64,000 nt of DNA from Adineta vaga. Its lineage: Eukaryota; Animalia; Rotifera. Position numbers and translations under genes: made by a program. Of the stretch, positions 30,397-43,690 are shown in pieces. Under the pieces are notes generated by a model. The model was not told where the DNA came from and searched no databases. It worked only from the letters and a program-made list of their open reading frames with translations. The DNA lies in contig CP075493.1 in NCBI GenBank assembly GCA_021613535.1, positions 13,082,001-13,146,000 on the forward strand, given 5' to 3'. Numbering within the stretch: position 1 is the stretch's first letter; each line of letters begins with the position of its first letter.

Positions 30397-30762
30397 AAAT
30401 GACTTTACTATATTCTCTCATTTGCCTGGATCAAAAATTATTTTAAAAAGAATCAAATAATGTTCTTACAGCTTCAAGATAAAGTATACAAAATTTTTCT
30501 TGCTAACATTGCGATGTTATAACACGAACATTATTTACGTATATTTATAATTTGTTTGTATTTTAATTTTTTTCTATCGAATGAATGGGAAAGAAAAAAA
30601 AAAGATTCCCATCAAATGGGAACAGTTTCAAAAAATATCTCTGTTATTTCATTGACGTCAGATAATATTTAAACGAAAATAACATAATTGAGAAAGAATG
30701 ACGTGAAATGCAAGAAGATAAGACAGATCTAATCCATGTTAGACCTTTAATAGAATGTGGTG

Positions 30763-30769
30763 TATAAAA
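30763..30769 (+). promoter_or_regulatory. Candidate TATA box of the DUF2059-like gene
   Basis: TATAAAA ~60 nt upstream of the ATG and retained in copy 2; weak evidence in AT-rich DNA. Confidence 0.35.
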
Positions 30770-30827
30770 ATCGAATGCATTTTACAAAAGAATATTCATT
30801 TTATTATTCACTTTTAACAAAATCAAA

Positions 30828-31307
30828 ATGTTTATTCGTTTATACTTGATCACGATGGGTATTGCTTTATTTATGGCAACTGATGGCAAACCAATACAAA
30901 ATCAAAGATTGACTCAACGTATCAATACTTTACTTGATTTAATTAAAGTTGAAAAAAGTTTCGAAGAAATTCCAAAAATGATGGCCAAGTATATTCGTTC
31001 AACGGTGACAGAGAAATCTCTAATATTAACGGCGATTGAAGAGTTTTTCTCATTCAAATCATTACGTCCTCAAATTGTTGAGCTCTATCGTGAAGTTTAT
31101 ACACCATCGGAAATAAATGCAATGATCAAATTTTATTCAACACCATTAGGAAAATCAGTGGCTGATAAAGACATAAAACTTGACCAAGGTTATGATCGTA
31201 TTTTAGAAGAACGATTCAAAGAACAGCAGCCACAAATAGAAGCATGGTTCAGTGAACAACGAGATGCGATGGAAACACCAAATATATACGATGAAGATAA
31301 AAATTAA
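30828..31307 (+). CDS. Secreted DUF2059-like protein, copy 1, intronless
   Basis: Signal peptide; IVELYREVYTPSEINAMIKFYSTPLGKSV matches the DUF2059 consensus Y...FT..EL.....FY.SPLG. Confidence 0.85.
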   Translation: MFIRLYLITMGIALFMATDGKPIQNQRLTQRINTLLDLIKVEKSFEEIPKMMAKYIRSTVTEKSLILTAIEEFFSFKSLRPQIVELYREVYTPSEINAMIKFYSTPLGKSVADKDIKLDQGYDRILEERFKEQQPQIEAWFSEQRDAMETPNIYDEDKN

Positions 31308-32119
31308 TACATGGCTCGATTGAAATACTTGAAGCAGATTTTCTCATCTTCCATTTGATCGAATAATCGAGATTTTTCTTTAAAATTTTTGAAATCTTAA
31401 TCCAATAAATTAATCATGAAACATGATAACATCTAAGTTATCTTTTCAAGAAGGAAATTTCATTCTCATTTACATAGACAAAGTTGCATACCTTGAGAAC
31501 GGCAAAGGTAGAATATTGTCAGCTATATTTTATTGACGTCATACAGAAATACAATCAATCTTTACTTAACGACACAATGTCTAATCATTTTTATTTAAAT
31601 TCGTTTTATTAACTCTGGATAGAAAAGGGAAATGATTTACTTGGTATGTACATCTTATCTGTTGTACGCATGTTTACAAAGAAAACGCTAATCTCACGTA
31701 AAATCTATTACATTAACGAACAAATTTTTCTTTTACTAACACAGTTACACATCTGTGATGAGTTTGAAATTGACTTGAACATGAGAAGAAGGAGGAGTAT
31801 TCTCATGATCTATTTCGATAATATTTCTTTCAGCAAAATACATGGATGACACCGAGTTGATATGATAGTTTCTGCTTGATTTTCTCATTCATATTTGTTC
31901 TCAGCTGTTAGAGGATGATACACGTCATCCTCTTTAGTTAGTTACATGACTTTTCTTTCGTTCTTCACATATGTTATATATGCTTTTTTTTCTGTTCTGC
32001 ACATATCATATGTTCCATGTTGTCTGTTCTCTTCACCTATGCTTCTACATTTCATCATCTTTCGTTACCTCGACATATTCAATCATGTTTCATCATCTCG
32101 TTACCTCGATGTATTCACT

Positions 32120-32212
32120 TGATTTCATCATTTAGTTGATTGTTCACTGATATCTTCTCGTGATTTCATCATTTAGTTGATTGTTCACTGATATCTTCTC
32201 GTGATTTCATCA
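32120..32212 (+). repeat. 41-bp tandem duplication present only in duplication copy 1
   Basis: TGATTTCATCATTTAGTTGATTGTTCACTGATATCTTCTCG twice here, once in copy 2. Confidence 0.9.
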
Positions 32213-32664
32213 TCCACTGCATTGTTCTAGTCTTTCCCTCTTTGTGTTATCATCGATCCCTCGATCTCTCGCTCATTGTGTTCACTTGCTATAAATACTG
32301 CGTGATTTTTAGCAATAAACATTCATTCATTCATCTATCAGTCTCATTTGCTCTTCGAGCGACCCGCTCACATCAGCATAAGAGAATGATTCTGATCTTG
32401 AGCATAATACATAGCAAAAAAAGAAGATACACTAAATTGGAAAAGAGAACAAGATAAAAAAAAGATTTTCTCAAACGATAAATACTCAAACATTTCCCTA
32501 GGAATTATACTGAGTGAGGTCATAATCCCATTACCCGCGGTATCCATAAAAAAGCAACCAACTGACCACGTTACCCTATGCGGTATCCACTTCTCATAGT
32601 TCACTATTGCCTCTACAGCAGTAAGAAGCGTACCAACTATACTATGCATATCGTTACCCCAATA

Positions 32665-32895
32665 TCTGACTATATCCTGAAAGCTGAGGAATGTGAGTTG
32701 ACTTGGTGTATCCATCTTGATACTCAGTGTCTGAGTATATCCTGAAAGCAGAGGAATATGAGTTGATTTGGTGTATCCATCTCGATACTCAGTGTCTGAC
32801 TATATCCAAAAAGCTGAGGAATGTGAGTTGATTTGGTGTATCCATCATGGTACCCGGTATCTGACTATACTCTGAAAGTTGAGGAATATGTTTTG
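32665..32895 (+). repeat. 65-bp subterminal tandem repeat (~3.5 copies)
   Basis: Units start at 32665, 32730, 32795 and 32860; core GAGGAATRTGAGTTGAYTTGGTGTATCCATC. Confidence 0.9.
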
Positions 32896-33145
32896 ATTTC
32901 ATTCAAACAACTCTTACGACACTAACTTTTTTCTTTTAGTGACTTTTAATCTGTCCTGATAGTTAGGAGCAACTGTGTGTTGTAAAATGCACTTATGAAT
33001 CAGATAGTAGCGATAAATTTTTTTCCGGGCGTAGTTTCATATGACACTTTAGTGCCTTCGTGTGGGTTGGCGAAGACGAAATGATATTTGTTATTCAGTA
33101 GTCGATTGGTAAAAGATCTGTGTGATTTCAGTGCAGTTTCGGTTA

Positions 33146-33410
33146 CCGAGCACCCTCACTTGTTGCTTTGCCCACCGATCCCGCTTTCCGAGCACCCTCA
33201 CTTGTTGCTTTGCCCACCGATCCCGCTTTCCGAGCACCCTCACTTGTTGCTTTGCCCACCGATCCCGCTTTCCGAGCACCCTCACTTGTTGCTTTGCCCA
33301 CCGATCCCGCTTTCCGAGCACCCTCACTTGTTGCTTTGCCCACCGATCCCGCTTTCCGAGCACCCTCACTTGTTGCTTTGCCCACCGATCCCGCTTTCCG
33401 AGCACCCTCA
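33146..33410 (+). repeat. Perfect 42-bp GC-rich minisatellite (6 copies plus 13 nt)
   Basis: CCGAGCACCCTCACTTGTTGCTTTGCCCACCGATCCCGCTTT repeated without mismatch and without spacers. Confidence 0.95.
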
Positions 33411-33539
33411 AATATTTGCTATTCAGTTAGTTTCTCATGTTTTAGATTAGTTTATATGAATTTTCGGTTAGATGGTAGACATGGAAAAGTTTGATTTATT
33501 GTACAAAAGATATGAGAGAGAAAGGCAGATTGTGAGTAG

Positions 33540-35594
33540 CTATGAGGTTCGATAGTCGTATACAGAAATGTTTTTTTTCTTACAATTCATGAAATTAAAC
33601 AATAAAAGATAAAAGATTTTACTTTTTGGAAAAGAGAAGGATGACAATGCATTTTGGTATTTCTTTAATTTAGAATTTGTTTGTTCACAGACAACAGTGT
33701 TTATTTGATTGATATCGGAATATTTGTATGGATTGGTTTGTGCCTGGCACATTGGTCTTGTATGATTGCAAATGTGAAATTTATCAACCAAGAAAGTCAT
33801 TTTGTTTCTATTAATAGAAGTGCATGGATATACATGGATCGAATAAGTAATATACACTTACAATACATCAGTACGCGTTGTTCGATGTATTTGACCATGT
33901 TCAAGACGATGTCGAAATGTAAGTAGCAAACCACATGCATTATCATATATCAAATACTTAGGTAATGGACTACAGAGAAAGAGTTTTGTGTAGGGCTTAT
34001 ATGAATTCTATATACGCAATTAATACTTACACTGATGATGATACGCAATCGATTGTTGTAAATAAACGATGGAGTACTCGTGTAGGTGATTCAGATCTAT
34101 ATAATTCGTTGAAATTCACAATGATACCACAGTTGTACATAGTATGTACTACCCCATAAGATGTTTGACGAGTATAATAACGATCCGTTCTATTTCAGAA
34201 CAAAAATGATTAATTCATATTTTTTATATTCGTGATTACCTTGAAACATTACAATCCCCAACATTATAATCATCTTTGTCCGTCGAACAACGTACTGATT
34301 GAGTATACTCAAGATCAATGTGTTTGGGGCAATACTTTGTGTTCTTCCAGTAGCCTGGATTTTGTTTATCTGGAATCATTTCAGGACGAAAACCACAACC
34401 CCATTCAATATCACCTAAAATTGGCGTCAGAAAAACTTGATAGTTATTTGAAAAAACTCTCACCTAGCTCTTCCGAATGAATGAGTTCCTGCATAAAACC
34501 GCAAATAAAACGATTAGGTTTTTGGAATCCATCGATAACAATGGCTTTGCAACACTGACTATCACATTCAAATTTTAACATGTGACTTGACCAATATACA
34601 ATAAAATCACGTTCTAATTGAGGCAATTGAGAAGCAAAAAAAAGATTACGTTCATCATGATTGCTTATATGATATGGAATGTCAATTTCTGTACTTGTTG
34701 ACAGGAAGAATTTTAATATTGATGTTGAATAAATTAACCAGATGTTTTCAAATAACCGACGTTCCAAAACTGGTGGATCTTTCATTTTAAGATCATTATC
34801 ACGAGCATGTTGCAATAACACTGACGTTATTGTATCGTTATAAGCCCCACAAAAATTTTCGAAGCCGGCGTACTAAAATAAAGTTCTATAGTAAAAAGAT
34901 TTCGAAAAGATGTCAGGAAGATTTGTTCGAGTTCAGAATGAATATTCATATATGATATACAAAGTTAATTATAATATCTTTAACCTACCATATTGATCAA
35001 GTCTGACACATATCGTAATAGAACATCAATATAAAGAACGCATTTACCACCGAAATAAATATACTTTTGATTGTATAAAGATTGGCGATTAACATAACGT
35101 TTTGAACCTTTGATGTAACTATTTGTATGATATTCAATATGACAGCAACGAGCAATGAAAATAACTCCATTATCGATATGATCCATAAGAAAAACGTTAA
35201 CTTTCTCTTTAAACTGTAATTTCAATGGTAGATGACAATGTAAACACGATAATGTAAATGGTTTTATAGTATGTAATGATGCCATTGTAAGAAAATGATG
35301 ATCTTCGGAGTAATTATTGATGATCTTATCGACGTTGTGTGATGAAAATAGATTTAACGAGGTGTTATCTGATTTTAATAAATTCAAAATAGATTGTATC
35401 ATTATGCCATCATATTTGACACCATACGTCAATTGAACCATATTCGATATATCATCGTATTTCTTTGAAATAAGTTCATCCAATTTACAATCCAGAAAAT
35501 ACATTAGATTTAAATGCTGCAGTGGTATTCGTCAATTTAATGAAATAAGAAACATTTCTTTATCATTGATATTAATATCATTATTAGAATTCAT
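33540..35594 (-). CDS. KDZ-family transposase with CxC5/CxC6-like cysteine clusters, 6 exons, one in-frame TGA at codon 21
   Basis: Spliced reading: CLHC...CCHIEYH; FENFCGAYN; LERRLFENIW; CCKAIVIDGFQK; WGC...YCPKH; YNCGIIVNFNELYRSES; YLIYDNACGL; LVDKFHICNH...C...NP...INTVVCEQTNS. These are the D, D, H and E motifs of KDZ transposases. ATG 35594 is in frame with 35504 across TGA 35532-35534. Confidence 0.85.
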
Positions 35595-36059
35595 CTGAAA
35601 ATAAAAAGAAAAGATAATTAGTGTAACATCTTCAATCCAATGAATAAATGTTGTTGTAACGAACTTGAGATGAGAAGGGCTGTGAGATAATGATAGGCGA
35701 TGTATCTGGTGTCTTTACGTAGCAAGCTGCTTTTCATTTACAAGATGAACGCTTTTATAGAAAACAGTAAACAATGAATATCAGTCAAGTATAGCGGTCA
35801 CGCTAGCATGGACGCGTTACAGGTCAACAGAGAGGCCAAATGATAGGTGATAGTGATATATCCCTTTACACTTGTGACTAGTGGAATTTCTGTGAAAAAA
35901 GCTTGATAAACGAATATTAATTTGTAGCTCTTTTATTGATGAACAATATGCAGTTAACAAATAAAAATCGTTAGACAAAACACACAGATAATCACACAAA
36001 TACAAAACAATCGTCACTTTCTATTGTCAAAACAAATGAGAAAGTAATAGGTAAATCGG

Positions 36060-38545
36060 TCAATGCACTAGTTCGATCTTCGAAAATTGTTAAACATTAT
36101 TCTTTTTCTTTTTTGATTTAGATCGTTCTTCATTATATGTTTTTCCTTTTCCAGTTAATTCACGACGTCGTTTTGGACTAGAAACTTCATGATCAAGGTT
36201 GTGCCCAACATCTGTTGACTCATCGGTAACTTCACATGTCACTAGAAATAAAGATACATCATATTAATGGCTATGGGAAACATGTATGTACTTACTATTC
36301 TCTTTATTACCATCCTGAGTGACAACAGACGCATCTGTTAGTTTACGATATCGTTCTTTTGATGGTTGTACAATGGCATCTTTATTCACAATTATTTTGA
36401 AATCATTGTATGGTTTTTGTTCCAAGATTGACACTCCATAAGGTGATAAATAGGTAGTATTTCTAGTATCAACTAAAAATTAAAATATGATTAATTATAC
36501 GAAATATCGATCGTTTCAGTCGCACTTACTCGTTTTCAAGGTATCGTAATACATGTTTATATCGTAAATTCCAAATTTGGTCAATGTAATAGAAAACTCG
36601 ACTGATGCTGATTTGTTTTGTGGAATGTTTTTCAAATAACATTCATGATACGAAGACTTGTTTGCTAACATTTTGTTTTCTTTGATTAATAATTTATAGT
36701 CGATCAATAATTGACATGCCTTATGGACGTCAACCATATTTGTTTTACATGTTTTATTTAATTTAGTGCTTGATAAAACAATCGAATCGGATAATAAAAT
36801 CTTTTTGCATAATATCTTCATATCTTCTGGAATTAATATATCAGATGATGGTGCACATGTTGTCGAAATTACAGATGAAGAAACTATATGATATATAAAA
36901 GTTATATATATTATGCAATGTTCGTGCGTTTTACTTGTTATATTTTGACATTGAATTGAATCAATTATTTGTTCATCATTTGTATTGGTCGAATCAATTA
37001 CTTGTTCAATAACATCAGATAAACAATTTTCAATTACACTTCGAAGAAGCATATTATCACTGAGTGTGGTTGAGTTATTTTCGATTGAAAATTCTAAACA
37101 CAACTGTAAGATATTAGATGCATAAAATGCTGAATATCTTACCGGCATTATCTTCAATCATTGATGGAATATTGATATCTTGAATGATATCAATCGATTC
37201 ACTTGTTATATTATAATCAATTAAATCAGCAACATCTTGAACAACATCTAAATTGATGCAAATGAAAACAAATAAATCATATACGTTTGAGATGCAATCA
37301 TTACTTGTGCATGATGTTGTTTGTTGAATTTGTGGTTAAATAGAAAATGAATCAGTAGTTGATTCTAAATGGAAAAAAATTGCTTAGTTTCAATAACTTT
37401 TACGTTCTATTTCGAACTATTAATTTAGCGACCCGATGTTTTTCTTAAAAGACAATAAGTGTAGATAAAAAAGTCATCTTCAAAAGCAAAACTTATTCAA
37501 GCTTCGAAATAATTAAGTTCTACATTGATCGAAGTAAAATACTATGGATGAGAAAGACGTATACTTTTCGACATGTATTCTGTAACTTTTATCAAATCTC
37601 GAAAGTAATCGTTGAAGAAGATATCTTACCTAAACTTTTTTTTAGAATAGAAGGACTATGAATTTTTTGTTGTATCTTTTCAATCCATGATCGTTGTGTT
37701 GTTAATATATTGTAACCGGTTTCATTTAATAATGATTTATTATCAACACCATGTTTGTAATAATCAAGATATTTTTGTAAGCTAAGTTGATATTCGGAAT
37801 TTAATTTTTTTCGAAAATCTTCAATTTGTTCGTCAGCTGTTGGCTCAGGTAGAATTTTAATCCAACTCTCAATTAATCGAAAAGAACTTTTGACGAATTT
37901 TCCATGTTTAAGAAAACTTTTTTTTTCCAAATTTGCGAGTAATCGTTTTACATCGATGCGATCACGTTTATGATCTCTGAAAAAAATTCGCAATTTTAAA
38001 TTTAATTGTTAAAAATAATATTCTTACTATGAAAAATGCTTCCATACGTTAAATCGCTGATCGAGAAGCAATTAATCGGATATTGAATAATTTTCAATTC
38101 GTTTAATACGTTTTTTTTTGTTATCAATCGAATCGGTACAAAATAATTGAATTGATTGCGGTAATAACAATTTGTGGAAAAAACTAACAGCAATTTTAGC
38201 AGCCGACAATCCAACTTTCATAGATTGAGATGGTTGTTTGTCCACACTAGATATTTGTACTTCATTTAACTCTTTCAAATCAACACCTTCAGGATAAGAT
38301 AATTTGTTTTCGACTTGATTGCGAATAAGAAAAAGTTCAAAACTATATTTCTGAGCAGAGATTCTGTTTTTCATGAACATAAATGATTGGGATAAAATCT
38401 GGATCTATTTATTGTCCTAGATATGAGATATTTACTCAAATAAAACTCTAAATGTTGCATTTATTGTGAATGTAAAAACATTACGATGCTGAATTTGAAC
38501 TAAATTGTTTTTCTAATAGACAATTAATTTCTGTCTTCGCTTCAT
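36060..38545 (-). CDS. Transposon-internal gene of unknown function with two related helical modules; frameshifted, boundaries uncertain
   Basis: ORFs 38072-38380, 38002-38214, 37592-37993 and 36516-37157 plus small exons with GT-AG signals; basic C-terminal motif SPKRRRE; apparent frameshift at a T-run near 38111-38119. Confidence 0.5.
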
Positions 38546-38684
38546 CATTCAACTCACGAACATATATTCACTCTTTCGCTACTTTTTTGAGTTGATTACG
38601 TATCACTCAACAGCTTATATAAACCACTTATATTTTATACTCCTCTATTATCAATAAGAGAACATACGCATATAATTTTCCTTT

Positions 38685-40230
38685 TTAGATATGAATACTC
38701 CGATGAAATAGATTCAAACAATGAATTAAACTTCGAACAAGGAACTGAAATAAACGTTGACTGTCAAGAAAGAGTATGAAATAAATCTTACATCAATGAT
38801 TAAATAAATATTGCACGTACCTTAACATTTCATTTGGATAAAAATAATTGCCAATATTGAGTTTAATTTCATTCAATGTATCCTTTTTGATACAATGGAA
38901 GTTAATTGATTTAATCGATTCTAATACTTTCAATGTGTCGAACATATTTTGTATGATGACAGTAATACGTTCAATTAAGTCGGCTCCGCGCCGTTCACAT
39001 GACTCTACAATAAAGTGTAATAATAAAAACTTCGATTAAAAAAATGTTTACCGGCACGCTTATTTTCTGGAACATTAAATAATCCATCATATGGCAGACC
39101 ATTGGAACGCATTTTGTACAAAATTGGTCGAAGATAATTACTGGTATCGTGATCATATTCATAAACACGGTTACCGATCAGCATTCGTGTGATAAACAAA
39201 TATTCCAAACATGGTAACTCTTCATTCAACAATGATTCTTCATGGATAAAATTTTTCTTCCAATAACCCAATATAATATTCTTTCATACAATCCTAATAA
39301 AATCAATTTGTAGTAGAGTATATTAGATAGAAATATCGTACCGTTGGTTTTACTTGAATCGTCAAAATATTCCAATAATGAAGACCATCGATCACCAGTA
39401 GTTGGAATTAACATTGTAAGACTTTTATCACGAATATCTTTAGAATATGTCATGGTAAATTTCTGAAGTTTGTATGCACCATTGAACGCCGTAGTTAAGT
39501 ATGGTTGAGATTCCTTTGCCTTCGGTGTGCTTGGTTCGAAAAAAGAAAAATCAGTCAAAGGGTGATCTTCGTCACTTGAAATAAATTTCTAAGATTTACA
39601 ATCAAAATCAAAATCTATTCAATATATTGCAAAAGTTATACTTACGGATGATAATTCGAGTTCAACAAGCGATTTTGCTGGTGTAAGATTTTCAAGACAA
39701 GTTGAAACAAATTTATCATTCGAATCTGTTAATTGAGATCGGAAATATTCTTCGACAAAATCGAACGCTTTTCTGATCGGTTTGATATAACCGGATTTAT
39801 GTGATACTGAATGAAAGAATAAAAACTTTATATTAATTTAAAATTATAAATAGATTTACCCGAGTCCTCTCGAAGAATTCCATAAAGCTTTAAGATGGTA
39901 TAATCGGATTTTTCCTTATCATGCAATTTTGTTTCACAAGACCTTAAATGATACATGAACCTGATAAAGTTATGTCAATAATAGTGTCAAAACTTACCAG
40001 TGCATGAAGCTAATCAAAACACACCAAAACAATGTTAATTCATTAAGCTTTCGGCTTCTATAATTCTTGAATATAGACACCAAGTATGGATGATCTGGAA
40101 AGAATTCTTCCAGCGTATGTGATGATGTTAGTAATTCACAAAAATCAACATTCGACGCATCAATTGCGTTTAATTCCTTGCATCGATCACCTCGATGAGA
40201 CATGAAAATTTTTTTAGAAATTATTGGCCT
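38685..40230 (-). CDS. Transposon-internal DUF3987/YfjI-like P-loop protein, multi-exon, one apparent frameshift (~39255); 5' end unresolved
   Basis: Spliced order LYGILRED(S)..HKSGYIKPIRKAF (degenerate Walker A), LTPAKSLVEL, FISSDE (Walker B), YLTTAFNG, LTMLIPTT, NGLYERILYW (Arg-finger-like), GADLIERITVIIQ parallels the DUF3987 motif order. Stop TAA 38685-38687. Confidence 0.55.
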
Positions 40231-41512
40231 AAAATAAAGATTTTTAATTTAGTAACGTATACGCTTAAACGAAAAAAAATCCAGCAAGCTGTTCGTGAAG
40301 AGACCTTGGGCAAATAAAACTGACAATCAATGCTTTGACTCTTGCAATCATTTATATAATTTCTTCGATGAAATAGAGAATGCAAACGATCCTTTTCCTT
40401 CCATCGTCTACGCAGAAGACGATTATCATATGTATTCCATACTTTTTCCGATGCGCTTCTTCTTGCAAAGTCAATTCCTTCTTTTTCTGCTATTTCTCAA
40501 TTCACACTAGACGCAAATGCAACTGATTGAATGTGATAGACAGGAATGGAGAAACAACGATAGTTTTTCTTCCTTCTTTTTACATAAGACTCAAGATATT
40601 GTCGGAACTGAAACGATGAGATTGATAAGAATCAATTTTTCATGCATTTGATATTGTTTATCTTTCAAAAAATTCAAGCAAATACTTTAAAATGAATTTG
40701 TCTAACTAACTGCGTATTGTGAGAGATCGAAATATTGAATTTTTGATGAATAAACAAGAGAACTAATAGAAACCGCTCAAATTTTAAGTAGATAAACCAG
40801 ATAAAGTAATGTGATGAATAACAAAAGAAAGCTATTTTACAAATAATAACTCAAGATAAAGTTCTGGCATTGAATCACTTACCTTGAACTAATATTATAC
40901 AGTTAGAAGACACAACTGTATAAAAGTACAGTATGCTATATATATAGTGTATTTCCTATGTCATAATAATCATACAATAGTCATTGTCTTATCGGTCAGT
41001 CATTTGTAATCGTATGCATATTAAACTGACGGTCATTATTGTTCTTTGCTAATATGCTATACATTTGCATATCAGTCAACAATCATGACATCCGTCATGC
41101 TAAGATTTCTCCCTGTACAATTCAGATGTCATCGACTATACGATAAATCAGCAGATTTTAAAACATTGACGTAAAATAATAATTGCACATATAGAGATGT
41201 AATGAAAGAATGTTGAGCATTTTCTTTACGCGCTCTGAATATTCCGAACATATGAACAAATATTTTACAATCGATTATTACATTAACGCGACACTACTAT
41301 CATTATCATGCATTATTTTCCATTATAATGTAACGACCAAATACATGAATATAAACATACTTATATTGAGTTTGAATTTGAAAGTATCATGTGTAATTTC
41401 TTGTATAAAAGGTTTCGAATATGAATGTAAACGGAATTGTGAAGTGAAATAGGTAATATTATTGCATTTGAAGAATATATCATTTATTCCCGAGGCAATT
41501 AAATCATTATAC

Positions 41513-41614
41513 AAAATCAACTCATATTCCTCAGGCTTGGGTACATAGTTGGATATTGGGATTGAGGTGGATTGAGATGGATACACCAAATCAACTCATA
41601 TTCCTCAGGCTTGG
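41513..41614 (-). repeat. Right-end subterminal repeats (2 copies), inverted relative to the 65-bp left-end units
   Basis: AAATCAACTCATATTCCTCAGGCTTGGG at ~41514 and ~41588. Confidence 0.85.
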
Positions 41615-41763
41615 GGATGGCTGTATTTTTGCTGGCATATTGAAGTCATTACCCTTGGATCGAATATGGTGATATGAATACCCATGTTCTTCCGTTGATC
41701 AGTTTCAGGGTATTGTGACGTTTGGCTGTCGATACCCAGTGTAATGATATTATGACATCTGTG

Positions 41764-43662
41764 TTCTATCGAATGAATGGGAAAGAAAAAAAAAAGATTC
41801 CCATCAAATGGGAACAGTTTCGAAAAATATCTCTGTTATTTCATTGACGTCAGATAATATTTAAACGAAAATAACATAATTGAGAAAGAATGATGTGAAA
41901 TGCAAGAAGATAAGACAGATCTAATCCATGTCAGACCTTTAATAGAATGTGATGTATAAAAATCGAATGCATTTTACAAAAGAATATTCATTTTATTATT
42001 CACTTTTAACAAAATCAAAATGTTTATTCGTTTATACTTGATCACGATGGGTATTGCTTTATTTATGGCAACTGATGGTAAACCAATACAAAATCAAAGA
42101 TTGACTCAACGTATCAATACTTTACTTGATTTAATTAAAGTTGAAAAAAGTTTCGAAGAAATTCCAAAAATGATGGTCAATTATTTTCCTTCAATGGCGA
42201 CAGAGAAATCTCTAATATTAACGGCGATTGAAAAGTTTTTCTCATTCAAATCATTACGTCCTCAAATTGTTGAGCTCTATCGTGAAGTTTATACACCATC
42301 GGAAATAAATGCAATGATCAAATTTTATTCAACACCATTAGGAAAATCAGTGGCTGATAAAGACATAAAACTTGAGGAAGGTTTTAATCGTATTTTAGAA
42401 AAACGATTCAAAGAACAGCAGCCACAAATAGAAGCATGGTTCAGTGAACAACGAGATTCGATGGAAACACCAAATATATACGATGAAGATAAAAATTAAT
42501 ACATGGCTCGATTGAAATACTTAAAGCAGATTTTCTCCTCTTCCATTTGATCGAATAATCGAGATTTTTCTTTAAAATTATTGAAATCTTAATCCAATAA
42601 ATTAATCATGAAACATGATAACATCTAAGTTATCTTTTCAAGAAGGAAATTTCATTCTCATTTACATAGACAAAGTTGCATACCTTGAGAACGGCAAAGG
42701 TAGAATATTGTCAGCTATATTTTATTGACGTCATACAGAAATACAATCAATCTTTACTTAACGACACAATGTCTAATCATTTTTATTTAAATTCGTTTTA
42801 ATAACTCTGGATAGAAAAGGGAAATGATTTACTTGGTATGTACATCTTATCTGTTGTACGCATGTTTACAAAGAAAACGCTAATCTCACGCAAAATCTAT
42901 TACATTAACGAACAAATTTTTCTTGTACTAACACAGTTACGCACCTGTGACGAGTTTGAAATTGACTTGCACATGAGAAGAAGGAGGAGTATTCTCATGA
43001 TCTGTTTCGATAATATTTCTTTCAGCAAGATACATAGATGACACCGAGTTGATATGATAGTTTCTGCTTGATTTTCTCATTCATATTTGTTCTCAGCTGT
43101 TAGAGGATGATACACGTCATCCTCTTTAGTTAGTTACATGACTTTTCTTTCGTTCTTCACATATGTTATATATGCTTTTTTTTCTCTGTTCTGCACATAT
43201 CATATGTTCCATGTTGTCTGTTCTCTTCACCTATGCTTCTACATTTCATCATCTTTCGTTACCTCGACATATTCAATCATGTTTCATCATCTCGTTACCT
43301 CGATGTATTCACTTGATTTCATCATTTAGTTGATTGTTCACTGATATCTTCTCGTGATTTCATCATCCACTGCATTGTTCTAGTCTTTCCCTCTTTGTGT
43401 TATCATCGATCCCTCGATCTCTCGCTCATTGTGTTCACTTGCTATAAATACTGCGTGATTTTTAGCAATAAACATTCATTCATTCATCTATCAGTCTCAT
43501 TTGCTCTTCGAGCGACCCGCTCACATCAGCATAAGAGAATGATTCTGATCTTGAGCATAATACATAGCAAAAAAAGAAGACACAGTAAATTGGAAAAGAG
43601 AATAAGATAAAAAAAAGATTTTCTCAAACGATAAATACTCAAACATTTCCCTCGGAATTATA
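41764..43662 (+). repeat. Direct segmental duplication, copy 2
   Basis: Starts TTCTATCGAATGAATGGG and ends GGAATTATA, as copy 1 does. Confidence 0.95.
42020..42499 (+). CDS. Secreted DUF2059-like protein, copy 2
   Basis: 159 aa, 146/159 identical to copy 1. Confidence 0.85.
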   Translation: MFIRLYLITMGIALFMATDGKPIQNQRLTQRINTLLDLIKVEKSFEEIPKMMVNYFPSMATEKSLILTAIEKFFSFKSLRPQIVELYREVYTPSEINAMIKFYSTPLGKSVADKDIKLEEGFNRILEKRFKEQQPQIEAWFSEQRDSMETPNIYDEDKN

Positions 43663-43690
43663 TTCATTTCCCTAACTGAACATATTGATA

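Follow-up and report, generated by a model that had tools for sequence, protein, structure and literature searches.

Whether the intron-split, co-oriented genes that lie between two imperfect inverted repeats in the genome of the bdelloid rotifer Adineta vaga form a mobile element, and of what kind, is the question raised by a 64,000-nt stretch at C1:13082001-13146000 (the window, G+C ~30%). The original prediction, made from the sequence of the window, had proposed a three-gene transposon here, comprising a transposase of the KDZ (Kyakuja-Dileera-Zisupton) type, a DUF3987-like partner and a repeated helical protein. Having searched the genome (100.8 Mb, six contigs) and protein collections with its parts, we consider it likely that window positions 32512-41763 are one copy of a KDZ cut-and-paste DNA transposon carrying a conserved DUF3987/winged-helix accessory module.

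The termini of this element were fixed twice and independently, once by the edges of a duplication that flanks it on both sides and once by other genomic copies, whose matches end at identical bases. The left terminus is common to the copies L002, L003, L004, L013, L015, L017, L018 and L021, and at least 12 genomic copies stop at exactly 41763. The span of 32508-41763 proposed at the outset was thus exact at its right end, whereas its left end was 4 bp off, the true start being 32512. The terminal inverted repeats (TIRs) are present as predicted and imperfect, with 25 of 35 positions matching in register from the termini (18/26 and 21/30 over shorter lengths), a score of 25/35 that is reached by just 2.5e-5 of random 35-mers from the window. 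Mirrored subterminal repeats, also foreseen, were borne out by a 31-nt core that occurs three times in direct orientation within 32686-32846, at a 65-bp period, and once in exact inverted form at 41576-41606, with 0 occurrences expected by chance. Further, degenerate units are present as well, and the 65-bp repeats on the left are likely candidates for transposase-binding sites.

When the genome was searched with either end, further loci matched with boundaries at these very bases, among them short, internally deleted copies that retain both termini and resemble miniature inverted-repeat transposable elements (MITEs). Perfect 8-bp target site duplications (TSDs) were found at L003 (CTTAAAAT) and L015 (TAAATTTT), and one matching at 7/8 positions at L017, so that TIRs combined with 8-bp TSDs, as in Zisupton/Dileera-type elements, are present at the level of the family. 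TSDs of 8 bp characterize Zisupton and Dileera, and those of Kyakuja measure 7 bp (PMC12730594). The ends are therefore recoverable, as had been proposed, and are not single-copy. The internal 3 kb (33450-36500) is single-copy at the DNA level in the genome, in which the coding exons of gene 2 and gene 3 have weak paralogs only. Judged by its motifs, ends and TSD, the element belongs with the Zisupton/Dileera-type KDZ transposons.

The transposase gene was read as six minus-strand exons with a total length of 1,635 nt, which keeps the frame (about 544 aa); the GT-AG introns between them are short, at 49-116 nt, and mostly have GTAAGT-like donors. These exons carry all of the motifs on which an intron-split transposase had been predicted (IDG, CG..EL..SE, YDNAC, DKFH..NH and CEQ), and the order of the KDZ catalytic-core motifs (IDG, YDNAC, DKFH..NH, CEQ) is kept here and conserved in two related contigs, one from a metagenome (L062) and one from Rotaria (L064), to which the amino acid identity is 40-82% per exon. 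Scanned exon by exon, the last exon matched Pfam KDZ (PF18758) at E=5.5e-4, with 20.1 bits against a cut-off of 26.6, and exon 1 matched Pfam CxC5 at E=0.058. The KDZ paralogs of the genome pass the Pfam cut-offs for both KDZ (39.6-41.3 bits) and CxC5, and the window exons are collinear with these paralogs (tblastn E as low as 6e-13 and 1e-14); a C2 paralog to which exon 1 can be aligned (E=2.3e-9) has an open reading frame (ORF) that passes CxC5 at 30.1 bits. Because the direct exon-by-exon Pfam matches are weak, the family assignments rest on transitive and profile evidence, and the anticipated Pfam matches, sub-threshold by exon, draw their support from the collinear, Pfam-passing paralogs.

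Upstream of the transposase gene, in the same orientation, gene 3 fills the place of the predicted DUF3987-like partner. Exon-by-exon scans gave no match of any window exon to Pfam DUF3987 (PF13148) at E<=1, and the gathering score was not reached. In hhalign, the core exon of gene 3 together with two orthologs aligned to a profile of DUF3987-type paralogs at E=7.7e-6 (probability 84%), and the single exon alone did so at E=1.9e-4. The alignment with the paralogs takes in the AF[DN]G and TG..W/F blocks, and the next block, G-LYERILY, matches DG..RFLY. Among the DUF3987 paralogs themselves, one locus passes at 92.2 bits and three others score 23-26 bits; for the paralogous elements that fall just under the 27-bit cut-off, the range is 21.6-25.5 bits. 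By this profile-profile evidence, gene 3 is a member of the DUF3987 helicase family. DUF3987 proteins are superfamily 6 (SF6), MCM-related helicases found in phages and in mobile elements of prokaryotes, and at the C terminus they bear a winged helix-turn-helix (wHTH) (PMC4889955); one PriCT-DUF3987 protein has been demonstrated to be a 5'-3' helicase (PMC11724360). Inspected by eye, the Walker A region of gene 3 reads ..SHKSG.. (GANKSSG in the paralog) instead of GK[ST], and a Walker B-like SSDED is present. The nearest ESM-Atlas (language-model) clusters to the strongest DUF3987 paralog are bacterial and phage DUF3987, and the accessory module is most probably derived from a prokaryotic mobile element or phage. 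A PDB sequence search with a DUF3987 paralog returned nothing useful.

The remaining coding sequence, between gene 3 and the transposase gene, contains two related modules, one in gene 2a and one in gene 2b. Gene 2b has homologs in Rotaria, Didymodactylos and metagenomes (P0001-P0006), and an AlphaFold2 model of its module (mean predicted local distance difference test score, pLDDT, 80.7) consists of a helix-strand-helix-helix-hairpin arrangement followed by two helices. The top Foldseek matches of this model were all winged-helix domains (cullin WH-B, TFIIE, MarR/SarA, ArsR and ORC), the best at E 0.016 and none at E<=0.001. As modeled, the 2b module is a winged helix, which fits the layout of the DUF3987 family with its C-terminal winged helix. 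The module of gene 2a is paralogous to that of gene 2b, is interrupted by an intron of 53 nt (38027-37975) and can be aligned to residues 300-400 of P0007, an A. vaga protein annotated on C2. A model of the second exon of gene 2a alone was poor (pLDDT 53), the module being intron-split, and was not used. The two paralogous modules account for the 'repeated helical protein' of the original prediction; in a sister family this part is the C-terminal portion of the DUF3987 protein, which makes the gene count uncertain. When 1.84 billion representatives were searched exhaustively with a profile of the winged-helix module, just 40 members turned up, and all of the named members that were checked are bdelloid (Adineta, Rotaria and Didymodactylos).

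The pairing of these genes is not confined to the window. When all six frames of the genome were scanned with Pfam DUF3987, matches were seen to adjoin KDZ genes at five other loci. At C2:16.21M and C3:15.25M both order and strand are shared, from a DUF3987-like gene through a 2b-like winged helix to KDZ. The C2 locus carries its own 32-bp inverted repeats, and the sister elements possess their own TIRs or inverted repeat arrays. Outside A. vaga, transposase, winged-helix and DUF3987-like coding sequences recur on two metagenome contigs and one Rotaria contig (Table 1), which were reached through homologs of gene 2b, so that co-occurrence in the same order was found at other copies and in other bdelloid species. 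The TIR core motif was absent from these three contigs by motif search, all of which stop short of recognizable termini. Two further KDZ lineages are paired with DUF3987, head-to-head in A. steineri and R. socialis and in tandem in R. magnacalcarata, and clusters with as many as 27 members suggest that Rotaria has multiple copies. All of the element's genes are under purifying selection, with Nei-Gojobori dN/dS values of 0.13 for gene 3, 0.25-0.35 for gene 2 and 0.13-0.15 for KDZ, computed from codons within aligned high-scoring segment pairs only and so biased toward the conserved parts.

Several related loci were observed along the way. Subtelomeric copies of a different KDZ element, at C1:17425001-17445000 (L050/L051) and C5:768001-788000 (L052/L053), are 98-99.97% identical over more than 13 kb and hold a DUF3987 gene (92 bits) and a KDZ gene (with CxC5) head-to-head, flanked by tandem arrays of about 52 bp; A. 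steineri and Rotaria socialis share this head-to-head layout. At C3:18345001-18365000 (L054/L055), an element of ~11 kb (about 2874-13874 of the joined region) has inverted tandem-repeat arrays at both ends and DUF3987-like and KDZ genes on one strand, and constitutes a third KDZ+DUF3987 lineage. Downstream of the element on L062, positions 10031-11894 contain an ORF with a weak RVT_1 match (E=5e-6), probably a neighboring retroelement.

Table 1. Coordinates of the element, its genes and flanks, and related copies. Positions are those of the window unless another locus is named.
Feature	Position	Strand	Remarks
Element	32512-41763		9,252 bp; all genes on the minus strand
Left TIR	32512-32546	+	starts GAGTG, then GTCATAAT..CATTAC core
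Left subterminal array	32658-32899	+	about four 65-bp repeats
42-bp minisatellite	33098-33475		about 9 units; between left subterminal repeats and 3' end of transposase gene
KDZ transposase gene	33540-35504	-	six exons; putative N-terminal CxC cysteine cluster
Transposase exons (approximate)	35504-34989, 34872-34464, 34414-34240, 34189-34031, 33969-33862, 33807-33540	-	
Gene 2b	36090-37335	-	low-complexity N-terminal part, winged-helix module, basic C-terminal tail resembling a nuclear localization signal; 5' limit approximate
Gene 2b winged-helix module	36519-36860	-	about 100 aa
Gene 2a	37592-38380	-	conserved ATG and stop; first winged-helix-like module
Gene 3, DUF3987-like (SF6/MCM-like helicase family)	38793-40203	-	six exons
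Gene 3 exons (approximate)	40203-39998, 39942-39860, 39806-39646, 39588-39342, 39293-39052, 39004-38793	-	
Right subterminal repeats	41508-41618	-	two units, inverted relative to left array
Right TIR	41729-41763	-	ends ...ATTATGACATCTGTG
Flank duplicate A	30572-32511		1,940 bp; ends exactly at left terminus of element
Flank duplicate A'	41764-43664		starts exactly at right terminus of element
DUF2059 ORFs	30828-31307 and 42020-42499	+	intact, 159 aa; Pfam E about 1e-11 to 1e-12 (A copy 3.5e-12)
MITE-like copies with both termini	L003; L013, L021; L015; L018; L004; L017		326 bp; ~430 bp; 575 bp; 694 bp; 926 bp; 983 bp
Related metagenome contig	L062 (13.9 kb)		gene 3, 2a, 2b and KDZ collinear, with matching exon pieces
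Related metagenome contig	L063 (6.9 kb)		79% nucleotide identity; subterminal repeats, gene 3, 2a, 2b
Related Rotaria sp. Silwood1 contig	L064		2a (end), 2b, KDZ

The copy in the window shows signs of decay. Compared with L063 and likewise with L062, gene 3 is missing one nucleotide near 39262, its exons totaling 1,151 nt, which is one short, and gene 2a has one extra A (a +1 frameshift) in the A9 run at 38107-38115 relative to L063, its exons totaling 736 nt, one above a multiple of three. An independent 151-nt read-contig from run X15 agrees with the window at every position from 37993 to 38143. A cryptic 50-nt GT-AG interval (39267-39218) might bring gene 3 back into frame, though conserved residues would then be lost. 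The element is present in DNA runs from several independent studies, and read contigs from four runs over 34400-40399 showed no joints, being scattered, unspliced, low-depth, 151 nt long and identical to the genome, and are neutral on expression. Runs X13 and X15, labeled as other organisms and guessed to be RNA, gave low-depth, unspliced 151-nt contigs that span exons and introns and are identical to the element; these could come from very close strains, DNA carry-over or cross-sample reads. An autonomous copy would have all of its genes open and expressed; given its two frameshifts in comparison with its relatives and the failure to find RNA support, this one is probably decaying and no longer autonomous.

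The element is bracketed by two direct copies, A and A', of a host segment of 1.94 kb, which differ by 36 substitutions (1.9%), one 2-bp indel and one 41-bp repeat unit. Both contain an intact DUF2059 ORF; between these, 14 substitutions change 13 residues and are clustered in two patches, with non-synonymous changes far above silent ones. The encoded protein is signal-peptide-like, and DUF2059 is described as a bacterial family. Segment A was found at these two places only in the genome; the 3' part of A, at 31906-32372, is 79-87% identical to C5:482149, C5:514203 and C4:9571598, an unrelated dispersed repeat or small gene family. The layout (L-A-E-A'-R) is formally that of a 1,940-bp target duplication around a copy with no short TSD. 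Kilobase-long duplications as a trait of the family were rejected, as no long direct duplications were found around its other members, and so was the idea that A is part of an LTR-like element (one with long terminal repeats), given that A is at two places only and that the MITEs stop where the 9.25-kb element does and not at the limits of A. Because the other family members have no such bracket and the MITE relatives have 8-bp TSDs, we take the bracket to be a one-off. It may have arisen through an insertion with a wide stagger, through a transposition that was aberrant or involved sister chromatids, through the integration by homologous recombination of a circle composed of A and the element, or through an assembly error. 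The last of these, in which two haplotypes or a circular form were stitched together around a real insertion with an ordinary 8-bp TSD, would agree with the difference of 1.9% between A and A', which we infer to lie within the range of allelic divergence. It is nevertheless unlikely, as neither junction (the end of A with the left terminus, or the right terminus with the start of A) arises from a simple heterozygous insertion and both need a real molecule, as the two copies are set apart by a 41-bp repeat unit and by 13 amino acid changes in an ORF that is otherwise intact, and as the element is present in the DNA runs of several independent studies.

A number of observations weigh against reading the locus as a KDZ transposon with a working accessory module. 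No single exon of the window reached a Pfam cut-off in exon-by-exon scans, and the locus was not listed in the six-frame genome scans with Pfam KDZ and DUF3987. The deviant Walker A motif makes the NTPase activity of gene 3 uncertain, the annotated proteins of the sister family start only at about position 165 of the DUF3987 profile, a clear TSD was seen in just 3/7 paired copies and not as an 8-bp repeat at the window copy itself, and no spliced transcript was found, the RNA-labeled A. vaga runs holding almost none of the element's words, which is no proof of silence. One might suppose that what lies here is a cluster of KDZ genes, domesticated and immobile, and no transposon at all, as its single-copy state in the genome and the purifying selection on its genes would allow. 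This is very improbable in light of the TIRs, the subterminal repeats, the MITE-like derivatives with TSDs and the frameshifts in the window copy; moreover, no counterpart of the locus was found elsewhere in this degenerate tetraploid genome, and cluster sizes point to multi-copy relatives in Rotaria. The accessory genes might instead be captured passengers, transduplicated from the host or horizontally acquired, with no role in transposition. Bdelloids do carry many foreign genes, and DNA transposons are known to capture genes, for example TET/JBP in fungal KDZ elements (PMC12730594). We hold this to be quite unlikely, however, for the pairing is kept in at least three diverged KDZ lineages and three bdelloid genera, with conserved order and under purifying selection, and the winged-helix family was found only in these bdelloid proteins among the 1.84 billion representatives, in which no free-standing host gene family was found.

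How many genes the transposon holds is a separate matter. Conserved coding sequence in one orientation at 36090-38380 and 38793-40203 agrees with the 'three genes' first proposed, but the count itself may be anything from two to four, as the accessory module may comprise one to three transcription units. That gene 3, gene 2a and gene 2b are the exons of one long gene beside the transposase gene is possible, if somewhat doubtful. The C2 protein P0007 (600 aa) unites DUF3987, a first and a second winged helix and a basic tail in a single chain that runs collinear with the series of gene 3, gene 2a and gene 2b, and prokaryotic DUF3987 helicases likewise bear a C-terminal wHTH (PMC4889955). On the other hand, L063 conserves the stop codons of gene 3 and gene 2a as well as the ATG of gene 2a, the spacers, at 260-390 nt, greatly exceed the introns of 47-116 nt and vary in length in L062, and a Rotaria annotation (P0004) has a separate gene that begins at 2b.

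As a KDZ transposon, the element would move by a transposase that attaches to the subterminal repeats, cuts the element out and reinserts it with a stagger of 8 bp. The DUF3987-like/winged-helix module would supply a DNA-binding NTPase of the element's own as an aid to transposition, a role that we infer for the helicase-like protein by analogy. It may act in target capture or transpososome remodeling, like the AAA+ partners of Mu, Tn7 and IS21, or alternatively in DNA unwinding, as in AcademH. The window copy would have been placed between the two 1.94-kb host segment copies by an atypical insertion or a later rearrangement. A bolder proposal is that the DUF3987/winged-helix protein is an obligatory cofactor of phage or prokaryotic derivation, that the elements are the first eukaryotic DDE class with an AAA+-type partner, and that the 1.94-kb duplication is the footprint of a helicase-assisted, widely staggered strand transfer; we regard it as a long shot.

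Each of the known systems resembles the element in part. The bacterial elements Mu (MuA/MuB), Tn7 (TnsB/TnsC) and IS21 (IstA/IstB) combine a DDE transposase with a separately encoded DNA-binding AAA+-type NTPase; these are prokaryotic systems, and their pairing is the model from which a function is proposed here. AcademH, in turn, is a eukaryotic DDE cut-and-paste transposon with its own helicase-type gene beside the transposase, and differs in its transposase superfamily, its TSDs of 9-10 bp and its helicase, which comes from another helicase superfamily. It has been described as a helicase-encoding Academ DDE transposon (Kojima 2020, as cited in PMC10045372). With AgaPH (a PriCT-DUF3987 helicase) and the phage DUF3987 replicative helicases, the accessory module shares its family by profile and the layout of a helicase core followed by a winged helix (PMC11724360, PMC4889955), whereas those proteins pair with primases in replicating elements and here there is no primase or polymerase, the DUF3987-like gene has introns and Walker A is deviant. 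Zisupton and Dileera (Bohne et al. 2012; Iyer et al. 2014; PMC12730594) share with the element a KDZ DDE transposase with a CxC cluster (putative here), TIRs, 8-bp TSDs and a multi-gene content of several kilobases, and the differences are the partner, here a DUF3987 (SF6 helicase-family) protein with winged helices, and the host, a bdelloid rotifer. Partners described for KDZ transposases include SWIM/SAP, HMG and Ulp1. TET/JBP dioxygenases are further such partners (PMC12730594).

Our search of the literature found no paper that links KDZ with DUF3987, and bdelloid KDZ elements appear as a passing mention in one review. A KDZ element with a DUF3987/winged-helix module thus appears to be previously undescribed, and together with the co-occurrence across species this supports the original suggestion of an undescribed multi-gene element family. 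Few eukaryotic DNA transposons have been studied as little as KDZ/Zisupton elements, whose known accessory genes mostly encode epigenetic modifiers. A retained gene of a phage-type, MCM-like helicase family, together with winged helices, suggests another way in which eukaryotic DDE transposition is run or targeted, one dependent on ATP, and with its defined ends, MITE partners and compact genes the element would be amenable to a reconstituted assay. The 1.94-kb duplication, with its duplicated and fast-diverging DUF2059 gene, offers a small case of transposon-associated gene duplication. In the bdelloids, animals known for their uptake of foreign genes, the element would be a case in which a eukaryotic transposon recruited a gene from a prokaryotic mobile element.

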